DNA of 63,042 nucleotides, filler included, from Reticulomyxa filosa (taxonomy: Eukaryota > Protista > Foraminifera): assembly GCA_000512085.1 (NCBI GenBank). It is 20 parts of 20 records of this genome, joined end to end, with 100 filler letters (N's around TTAATTAATTAA, not from the genome) between each part and the next. Parts side by side here need not be neighbours in the genome. Positions count along the whole stretch, not along the records: positions 2,511 to 4,091 come from ASPP01021911.1; 19 more parts are not named here. One strand, written 5' to 3'. Under the pieces are notes generated by a model. That model was not told the origin of the DNA and made no database searches. It worked only from the letters and a program-made list of their open reading frames with translations. Both the position numbers and the translations under genes were made by a program. Below, piece after piece: positions 2,511 through 24,030 of the stretch (position 1 is the first letter of the stretch; every line of letters starts with the position of its first letter).

Positions 2511-3085
2511 ACACAAATATCTACCACTATTAAATGGTGAAAATTCAATTCCACTAACATAATTAGTATGCCCATTGAATATTTGTAGTTGTTGATTATG
2601 TTTGAAATCCCATAAGCAAATGGTTTTGTCATATGATGAAGAACAAATGACATTTTGACGATTGTTATGATAATGATATGATGAAAATTTTACACAGTAT
2701 ACAAAGGATGAATGTCCATTGAATGATTGAATTTGTTTGTTGTTATCAACATCCCATACACGAACTGTTTTATCAGATGATCCAGAACAAATTAATTGAC
2801 AATTACCAAATGTTGAATAATCAATATTATACACCGATTTAGTATGTCCAGTGAATGTGTTAATTAATTTGGATGATGAACGAAATGTGTCAAACATAAA
2901 GAATTTAGTTGCCTATTTAACAGCAAACAAATTTATATTTGTTTATTTTTATTTCAATTAAATGAAAGACAAAAAAACGTAACATAATTAGTAATTAGTT
3001 TATCAAAATCATTTATCCATCCAAATTTAACGTGTAATATTCGAATCCAATGCTGGATAATAATTTGGATCTCGTTTTCCTCTGG
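2511..3085 (-). CDS. WD40-repeat protein, 3'-partial, with an N-terminal WIRIL/GWIxDFDK module exon (2984-3085)
   Basis: GH...CSGSSDKTVRVWD and GH...SSYDKTICLWD repeats. A GT-AG intron joins the module exon in frame to ATKFFMFDTFRSSSK. Further 5' exons are likely up to about 3300. Confidence 0.9.
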
Positions 3086-3719
3086 CTAATTCAATCACAA
3101 GCAACTCACAATAAATACAATAAAAACTTGAAGACAATCAACTTTTTATAATTTGTAATAGAACTTACTACTACTAGTTGAGTTAAAGCTTGTTCATCAT
3201 TGATAAGAGTTGTCATTTTGTAGCCGCTTTTATTTTTTTGCTTGGATCGTCTTCAATGATGTAAAATGTGAACTTTTAACTTTTTTTTTTCAAGTTCATG
3301 AAGGAACTCCAAAAATAGAATTTTGCAATATCTGTATTTTTTTAATGAAGAAAAATTATAATTTAATTATATTAAGAACAATAAATTATCTCTTTTTATT
3401 TGTTCAGAATATCATAATATAATCTTATGGTTAAAATAAAAATGCAAATATTTTTTATGTGATCCAATGAACTACGAAACAAACAAACCAAAGCAAAAAA
3501 AATAAAAATAAAATGAAAACTAGAAAGAAAAATAAAGATTTGTTGAAACTAAAGTAGCTCCAGTTCTTTTGATCAACAATGCTTTGGCAGAAATTGAATG
3601 TTGTAATTGAAGACTCCGGAACAAATTAGTTACTTTATTAATTTGATTTGCAAACAATTCGGTTGACGTTTTCTTTTTTTTTTTCTTAAATGACAAAAAT
3701 TTACTTTACTTTCTTTGCA

Positions 3720-4030
3720 ATGATATAAATTTAAATATCTTATTCCATTGTTTCCTTTGTCACATACAATTCATTCTTATTTGATTGAATATCCCAAAAA
3801 TAAATTGTTTTGATAATGATATGGCGAAAATTTCACGATTCAAATAACTTGAATGTCCATTGAATGATCAAATTTGTTTATTGTTATCAACATCACATAC
3901 ACGAACTTTTCTATCATCTGATCCAGAACAAATGAACTGACAATCATTAGATGCTGGATAGTCAATATTATTCACAATTAGTATATCCAGTGAATGCATT
4001 GATTAATTTGGATGATGAACAATACGATTA
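3720..4030 (-). pseudogene. Decayed paralogue of the adjacent WD40 gene
   Basis: Close nucleotide match to 2620-2885 (e.g. gaatgtccattgaatgat, tctgatccagaacaaat, taatttggatgatgaac) with indels and stops. Confidence 0.85.
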
Positions 4031-4051
4031 AAATTGAAGTTGATAATATAA

Positions 4052-4091
4052 TACAGTAAGATAAAAAAGAAAGTTGACACCTAAAATGCCA
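4052..4091 (+). mobile_element. Putative Tc1/mariner-type terminal inverted repeat with TA target site, at contig end
   Basis: TA-CAGTAAGATAAAAAAGAAAGTTGACAC is identical over 31 nt to 53033-53063. Both copies end a contig and their flanks are unrelated. Confidence 0.6.
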
Positions 4092-21669: not shown

Positions 21670-22790
21670 ATGAGTAACCAAATCTTTCAAACTTTGAAGG
21701 AGTTGCCAACTCTACTTTCTCACTTCCAGTGTGCTACGCAAACACAAACTCCTCATTTGTGGAGGCTGGAACAAAAGGGCTTGTTGTTCTTATCATATAC
21801 TTAAAAACGAGGACAAGCTTATCTGTGAGTATCCAAGAGATGTTAGATTACATTGTCACTGTGTAATGAAATTGGTAGATAACAACAACAATGACATCAC
21901 TCAAATCACTTTGTTGTCTTTTAGATCTTCTCAAATAAATATATATTAATGATGAAATATGTAAGTGTTTGGAGTAATATATCAAACAAATGAATTTAAC
22001 AATCATCCAATTATCATTGGAAGGTAATACGGTTAAATTATGATGGAGTGCGTGCAATGATTGGTGGAAGAAACAATCATTTTGTTATTTATCACTTATT
22101 ATCCAAACAGTATTAATGTATTTAATTTAAATATATATCAATTTATAAAACATGATACTTTACCAATTAATAATTGGATACAACATTATTGCTTTGTATC
22201 AAATTCAAAAAATTGAAAAGGACAAGAAATGATGAAAACAAATGAAGAAAAAAATTAACAAAATTATCAAATGTTATTATTTCGTCAAAATACGTATTAT
22301 CAATTGAATATGATGAAGATAACAGCGATTTTCCATTTCATCAACTATCTGTTTGTGATTATATTGAATCATACGTAGTATGTATCAATGATATCATCTT
22401 GTTCTTTGGGGATTTCACTATCCTAATGCTTCAAGTATTCAATTCGAGAAAACAAATGGACAAAACTTCAAACACTTTACACAATTCATTGTTTGATTGC
22501 GTTGCAATATTGAATGAAGAAGATAATGTAATATACATATCATTGGAGGAAGAGATGATAAAAGAAGAACAGTATCAATTCATGAAAACTAAAGTGTATA
22601 TGTGATGTAATAATTTGTTTATTTATTCTGATGAAACGCAAATAAATATGGACGTATGAAACTGATTAATAAATAGTCAAAAAATGAAATAAAATTGATT
22701 ATTGAATATTGAATTTTACAAATAAAATTTGAATGGATTGATGATTTTGATGAAATTATTATGAAATACAGCATATCAAATAAATTTTGA
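21670..22790 (+). pseudogene. Kelch-type beta-propeller gene, heavily decayed, ending in the WIRIL/GWIDDFD module exon
   Basis: MSNQIFQTLKELPT...LLICGGWNKRACCSYHILKNEDKLICEYP...AMIGGRNNH shows Kelch GG motifs with many stops and frameshifts. The last exon 22677-22790 reads SKNEIKLIIEY*ILQIKFEWIDDFDEIIMKY. Confidence 0.8.
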
Positions 22791-23799: not shown

Positions 23800-24030
23800 G
23801 TATTATATGAAACTGATTGATAAATAATAAACAATGAATAGTCAAAGAATGAAATAATATATTATTGAATATTGGATTCGAATTTTACAAATAAAATTTG
23901 GACGGATTGATGATTTGATAAAATTATTATCAGCTATAGTAGAATGAAATAAATTTTGAATAACCACAATTAGGATATATGTTAGTCATGCTGTCTTTAA
24001 ACATTGCTTTGTCTTTTGTTTTATTTATAA
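23800..24030 (+). pseudogene. Second decayed copy of the Kelch-family last intron, module exon and 3' UTR
   Basis: Aligns with 22650-22860 and encodes SKNEII..IIEYWIRILQIKFGRIDD.DKIIISY with two 1-nt indels. Confidence 0.8.

Follow-up and report, generated by a model that had tools for sequence, protein, structure and literature searches.

In SOCS-box proteins (WSB, SPSB) and poxviral PRANC proteins, a short terminal module joins unrelated repeat domains to a shared machine, and the LisH motif is found N-terminal to WD40 repeats and together with Kelch repeats in muskelin. The bc and da loops of Kelch propellers form their ligand face. In KLHDC2, KLHDC3 and KLHDC10, Kelch receptors of CRL2 with a C-terminal BC box/Cul2 box, the substrate is bound in a pocket at the top of the propeller (PMC12035522). 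The BC box follows the consensus (S/T/P)LxxxC/S/Axxx-hydrophobic (PMC4878042). The LisH of DCAF1 has 33 residues (PMC3847654). In the F-box genes of C. elegans, a conserved box is combined with a variable binding domain (PMC8120010), and in WD40 propellers interaction hotspots have been assigned to the positions R1, R1-2 and D-1 (PMC3419727).

This report focuses on a 34-residue module, hereafter the box, encoded by one exon of a WD40 gene of the foraminifer Reticulomyxa filosa and shared by the WD40 and Kelch propellers of this organism. The box is real, under selection and undescribed in the searched literature, where no description of the motif was found; our verdict is that of a lineage-specific, unnamed docking module of hypervariable receptors. 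As in KLHDC2, KLHDC3 and KLHDC10, a six-bladed Kelch propeller is followed directly by a short, predicted helical tail, but the R. filosa box is also placed N-terminally on WD40 propellers and belongs to hundreds of hypervariable paralogs rather than to a few conserved genes. As in FBXW and C. elegans F-box proteins, a short N-terminal helical module stands ahead of WD40 repeats, and the massive tandem expansion with pseudogenes, in which a conserved module accompanies a variable binding domain, recalls the expanded C. elegans families; the box, however, has 34 residues against 42-48 for the F-box, a motif of three helices. SOCS boxes and PRANC are terminal modules, whereas the box also occurs N-terminally and internally. 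The LisH motif (LIS1, TBL1, WDR26, muskelin, DCAF1) is similar in its length of about 33 residues, its helical nature and its association with WD40 and Kelch propellers.

Gene structure at the locus

The window is a stretch of 63,042 nucleotides in which 20 parts of the R. filosa genome are joined end to end. The gene described here lies in the part from 2,511 to 4,091, which is the 1,581-nt contig ASPP01021911.1, and its exons were searched one by one rather than as a joined spliced product (Table 1). The translation of the box exon gave the same 34 residues as in the initial annotation, and the phase-0 start after an AG acceptor claimed there holds, with the WD40 exon next downstream. In contigs L001, L007 and L010, leaders resembling exon 1 precede the acceptor of the box exon by 115-131 nt, and the placement of the second donor matches that of paralogs followed by WD40 repeats. 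Judged from these conserved boundaries, the box exon is probably spliced into the transcript. The relatives named for exon 3 are all R. filosa proteins. Gene models often drop the box exon; the database model of this gene (P0006) begins within exon 3 and misses it.

Table 1. Features of the WD40 gene and its surroundings, with positions counted along the window
Feature	Positions	Strand	Remarks
Exon 1, ATG at 3216, 16 codons	3169..3216	-	Short leader, as usual in WD40 type-A genes
Intron 1, 83 nt, GT..AG, phase 0	3086..3168	-	Acceptor position shared by paralogs; splicing predicted
Exon 2, 34-aa box, 102 nt, symmetric phase 0-0, AG/GT-bounded	2984..3085	-	Translation, paralog alignment
Intron 2, 71 nt, GT..AG, phase 0	2913..2983	-	Donor right after the Tyr34 codon
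Exon 3, start of WD40 propeller, three Pfam WD40 repeats	2511..2912	-	Open for 134 codons, ends at contig edge
Broken tandem paralog of the WD40 exon	3804..4020	-	82.5% identical to 2661-2881; frameshifts and stops

A box exon belonging to the broken tandem paralog, if any, would fall past the contig edge. A stretch of ~50-110 nt at 3693-3800 is repeated in contigs L007, L009, L010 and L011 at 72-94% identity and probably represents a 3' end region that WD40/Kelch family genes have in common.

A portable exon under purifying selection

Exon anatomy was compared for 27 box copies in twelve R. filosa contigs and the window. Phase-0 starts after AG were found in 23 of the 27. Of the other four, two are broken, one adjoins Kelch with no intervening intron and one is merged partway through the exon with a NACHT frame. 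GT directly follows the Tyr34 codon in 18 copies. In seven Kelch-only copies the frame continues for a few codons before a stop, and six of these seven exons (in L001, L006, L008, L009 and L011) bear a GT one base past the Tyr34 codon, which is either a used phase-1 donor or a relic of a lost WD40 junction. At L011 6486 this offset GT is a near-perfect donor. The two further copies of the initial annotation (22677-22790 and 23842-23952) lie outside contig ASPP01021911.1; equivalent Kelch-terminal exons were recovered independently in the same five contigs. Three-part genes, in which a Kelch exon, an intron, a 99-nt box exon, an intron and a WD40 exon follow each other, are present in L002, L003 and L010.

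Among the 23 intact exons, pS is 0.535 and pN 0.222, giving a dN/dS of 0.28 (column bootstrap 0.17-0.47), and identity by codon position is 0.68/0.88/0.61. The codon-position pattern and the dN/dS indicate that the box is coding and constrained and rule out a non-coding DNA repeat; purifying selection on the module is thereby confirmed. Its conservation equals that of the Kelch core (0.78 vs. 0.76).

Distribution and architectures

A box profile built from 35 copies matched 174 cluster representatives at E<=0.001, 82 of them at E<=1e-10, among 1.84 billion proteins, so the likeness of the window exon to other boxes is not due to chance. With the C-terminal box of the Kelch protein P0269 this exon shares 61% identity (20/33; pairwise E 2e-13). 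When the best 150 of the 174 matches were classified locally, 82 boxes lay before WD40 repeats, 19 after Kelch repeats and 6 between Kelch and WD40, and 39 were without a recognised neighbour, mostly because their gene models read into introns. The box is present in the gene model of 48 of 120 WD40 relatives. A Kelch profile search returned 464 proteins, and 75 of the 116 newly listed ones contain the box; most of the other 41 models run into the intron ahead of it. Most long N-terminal extensions on box proteins likewise look like gene-model artefacts. The module is therefore portable, N-terminal on WD40 and C-terminal on Kelch propellers as originally proposed, and additionally internal in Kelch-box-WD40 genes.

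The profile scan proposed in the initial annotation found many copies in R. filosa and none that could be assigned to another organism, and the partners that occur as families are limited to WD40 and Kelch propellers. All ten divergent matches that were looked up belong to R. filosa. A search of viral, metagenomic and prokaryotic contigs, which is weak for a 34-residue motif, returned no relatives outside this species; a region search among long proteins listed two R. filosa proteins only, and the ESM Atlas gave no usable match by features and only long helices by structure. Pfam found nothing meaningful in exon 2 by itself.

W13, R15, G22, W23, I24, F27 and Y34 are near-invariant. Gly22 occurs in 265 of 270 copies, three copies have proline at position 25, and a divergent copy in L012 is interrupted midway by an insertion that contains proline.

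Several further arrangements were observed. A fourth architecture, Kelch-coiled coil-box-WD40, is represented at L007 4939-5040 (+) and by P0242 and P0265. At L003 2417-3550 (+) an unrecognised domain without Pfam match (residues 60-325 of P0227) lies in frame ahead of Kelch-box-WD40. At L004 1-927 (+), a RING-like/TRAF zinc-finger frame continues in frame into the first exon of a box-WD40 gene whose WD40 exon looks damaged, and at L005 110-1295 (+) an intronless NACHT open frame enters the box exon midway, apparently at a recombination point inside the exon; each of these two fusions is a single case. Conversely, P0361, P0366, P0368, P0370 and P0372 belong to the same Kelch family, with a charged coiled-coil tail in place of the box; the tail of P0361 includes a domain named caspase p20 by UniRef, which Pfam did not confirm. 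Such exchangeable tails suggest that the Kelch propeller may act as a sensor with swappable outputs.

Head-to-head pairs of a Kelch-box (or Kelch-box-WD40) gene and a box-WD40 gene lie at L001 3136-5970, L009 492-3803 and L010 1236-5415, ~500-800 nt apart, with intergenic stretches that are not conserved. L001 and L009 are duplicates with Kelch regions 92% identical.

A possible history of fusion and truncation

The three-part Kelch-box-WD40 genes, absent from the initial annotation, may hold the history of the module. In a midpoint-rooted WD40 tree that included 25 type-A rows drawn at random, the WD40 tails of seven three-part genes formed a single branch (SH-aLRT 95) nested within the type-B group of box-WD40 genes (nesting support 83). 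The boxes of three-part genes are of Kelch type; their identity is 0.61 with Kelch-only boxes and 0.50 with those of type B. By the simplest path, a box-WD40 gene would have gained a Kelch exon at its front and would later have lost its WD40 part, by a donor shift and a stop, leaving the box C-terminal. The reverse order of events is possible. The Kelch tree is star-like, with the three-part genes scattered; event order is not readable from it, and repeated loss or recombination is likely. The proposal of exon shuffling stands as far as a portable exon is concerned, but probably not as hopping alone, since the three-part genes suggest fusion followed by truncation.

Variable binding faces

Hypervariable Kelch columns were defined as those in which the commonest residue accounts for <30%, and loop classes were taken from the secondary structure of the model. 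All 21 such columns fall in the bc/da (top-face) loops; the bottom loops, the strands and the box contain none (Fisher p 5e-12; 5e-6 against bottom loops). pN is 0.32 in the top loops and 0.12 in the strands. In the hypervariable columns pN exceeds pS (0.57 vs. 0.44), but these columns were chosen for their variability, so the excess does not prove positive selection. Among 138 paralogs of the window WD40 exon, the eight R1, R1-2 and D-1 positions have a mean entropy of 3.2 vs. 0.9 (p 2e-6), and all eight are among the 12 most variable columns. Both families thus vary on their binding face, in agreement with the rapidly turning-over receptor families of the initial annotation. By analogy, a constant box on propellers that vary at their top face is the pattern of the C. 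elegans F-box receptors.

Predicted structure of the box

The AlphaFold model of P0269 (80 sequences, mean pLDDT 88) comprises a six-bladed Kelch propeller at residues 6-331 and, beyond it, the box as a helix at 342-374, along which pLDDT drops from about 77 to 58. The box is therefore predicted to be helical and to lie outside a closed propeller, contrary to what an integral propeller strand would require; a strand or blade identity was likewise rejected on the WD40 side, where the Pfam match begins 15 residues into the exon after the box. A long helix with falling pLDDT is not a box fold. Modelled alone, the box is again one helix, and a fold search with it lists generic helices with Z<=4.6, which is uninformative. 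Both halves of the box are amphipathic with the same facing, and positions 19-24 are not amphipathic. A helix, a short loop at G22-W23 and a second helix are plausible, given the Gly22 frequency, the three prolines at position 25 and the Pro-containing insertion in one copy.

A Foldseek search of the PDB with the Kelch and box model placed KLHDC10-EloB/C first (9d8p_A, E 1.2e-14) and also listed KLHDC3 and KLHDC2-EloB/C. The VIA structural alignment reaches model residues 355-375, into the EloB/C-binding C-terminal tails of KLHDC10, KLHDC3 and KLHDC2 (Z 24-27, rmsd 5-10 A with the tail included), and muskelin, too, aligns into the helix that comes after its Kelch domain. Scores about level with those of KLHDC are reached by NS1-BP, LZTR1 and plant specifier proteins, and plain Kelch domains do equally well. 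In the model, a helical tail thus follows the Kelch propeller at the position of the EloB/C-binding tails; the match is driven by the propeller and is a positional analogy, not box homology.

Comparison with known adaptor boxes

The initial annotation viewed the module as an F-box/SOCS-box-like adaptor, and membership in these families was not upheld. In 237 box copies with flanks, the BC-box consensus was never found (0/237), position 10 being never C/S/A, and the (S/T/P)LxxxC signature of the KLHDC tails is accordingly missing. Hydrophobic residues at W23/F27/V31 agree with the spacing of the Cul2 box (hydrophobic-P-xx-hydrophobic-xxx-hydrophobic) in 236/237 copies, a spacing generic for helices, but its proline is absent from position 24 (0/237), and the regular expression matched elsewhere in 4/237. 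The LPxE start of the F-box is found in 0/237 copies, and the LPxP of the SOCS Cul5 box in 1/237. Pfam searches with 87 diverse boxes and with both halves found no F-box, SOCS (SOCS_box), PRANC or LisH, and PDB profile searches with the whole box and the halves retrieved no chain of these four families. The PDB sequence matches that were returned (P2X3, YPEL5, guanylate kinase) are due to chance (E>0.2). Some paralogs are named 'F-box and wd40 domain protein' by NCBI, yet their box gives no F-box match. In its second half the box is spaced like helix 1 of the F-box, isoleucine standing where the F-box has proline. Transcriptomes of the foraminifers Ammonia, Elphidium and Globobulimina may contain a motif of similar spacing with G-Y-I-R and I-P-x-D-I; if related to the box, it would provide the proline that is lacking here and make the family wider. 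As far as its sequence tells, the box would work like an adaptor box, conserved beside a diversifying substrate domain in an expanded family as F-boxes are, while matching no family tested.

Discussion

The exon is best explained as encoding a docking box that stays the same across two large, variable families of substrate receptors. The diversifying top face of the WD40 or Kelch propeller would bind targets, while the amphipathic box would bury its hydrophobic face on one conserved host protein. This partner would most likely be a Skp1/Elongin-C-type adaptor of a cullin-RING ubiquitin ligase, a reading to which a probability of about one half is given, and the bound targets, possibly foreign proteins, would be ubiquitylated. 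Docking on a ligase is favoured by the positions of the box, which works at the N-terminus, at the C-terminus and internally, as cullin boxes do; the link to cullins is one of analogy.

A LisH-like dimeriser is rather unlikely, although several properties of the box point to it. By this explanation the box would pair with itself, and the resulting homo- or heterodimers of WD40 and Kelch receptors would serve avidity, combined recognition or entry into a CTLH/GID-type ligase. The box equals the DCAF1 LisH in length and has the same typical partners; its halves are amphipathic on the same side, Kelch and WD40 genes stand head to head in three contigs, and fused Kelch-box-WD40 genes exist. Helix 1 and the Gly-aromatic pair seem, by eye, to fit the LisH consensus, but this likeness needs a four-residue insertion before G22. 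LisH is a two-helix hairpin that forms an antiparallel dimer; the monomer models of the box show one long helix, with low confidence in its second half. Neither 87 whole boxes nor 40 first halves matched Pfam LisH, and no LisH chain was retrieved from the PDB, in searches where weak matches are lost to the HMMER filters, the profile is narrow and the fit requires an insertion. Between box classes the identity is 0.50, against 0.62-0.64 within a class, a modest but real divergence.

It is improbable that the box serves in targeting or signalling without a tie to ubiquitin, either as a helix lying on a membrane surface or as a homotypic effector handle like those of NLR-like immune receptors. 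AlphaFold does give one continuous amphipathic helix, the same Kelch family also bears another tail, a coiled coil, together with the putative caspase domain of P0361, and in L005 a NACHT ORF continues in frame into the box exon. Against this, the near-invariance of W13, R15, G22, W23, F27 and Y34 suggests that a specific protein interface, and not amphipathicity in bulk, is conserved, Gly22 and the proline insertion of L012 argue that the helix breaks, NACHT is fused to the box in one chimera only and the caspase assignment lacks Pfam confirmation. Finally, a structural cap, or a hitch-hiking piece spread by unchecked duplication and recombination in a genome rich in pseudogenes, in either case without a common partner, would agree with the many broken or chimeric copies (window 3804-4020; L003, L004, L005, L012) and the confinement of all copies found to R. 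filosa, but is very unlikely in view of the purifying selection on the box, its conservation at the level of the Kelch core, its retention as the last exon of Kelch-only genes, and its place before WD40 and after Kelch, unrelated folds that it could not cap in the same way.

Beyond the docking box itself, a wider picture can be offered as a tentative and somewhat doubtful one, namely that R. filosa possesses an undescribed intracellular receptor system, in which hundreds of WD40, Kelch and Kelch-WD40 propellers, hypervariable at their binding faces, would dock, via a new class of adaptor box unrelated to the F-box, BC box, BTB or LisH, on one ubiquitin ligase or effector complex, for innate defence in a giant syncytial cell. 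Such a system would perhaps also exist in other foraminifera.

The many WD40 and Kelch genes of R. filosa are annotated as plain repeat proteins, and the box unites them as one candidate receptor repertoire. Its 34 residues provide a bait for finding the shared machine. Should the partner be Skp1, Elongin C or a cullin, the box would be a new adaptor motif and the repertoire a rhizarian parallel to the nematode and plant F-box expansions; should it be another protein, the box would represent a new way of organising intracellular recognition in protists.
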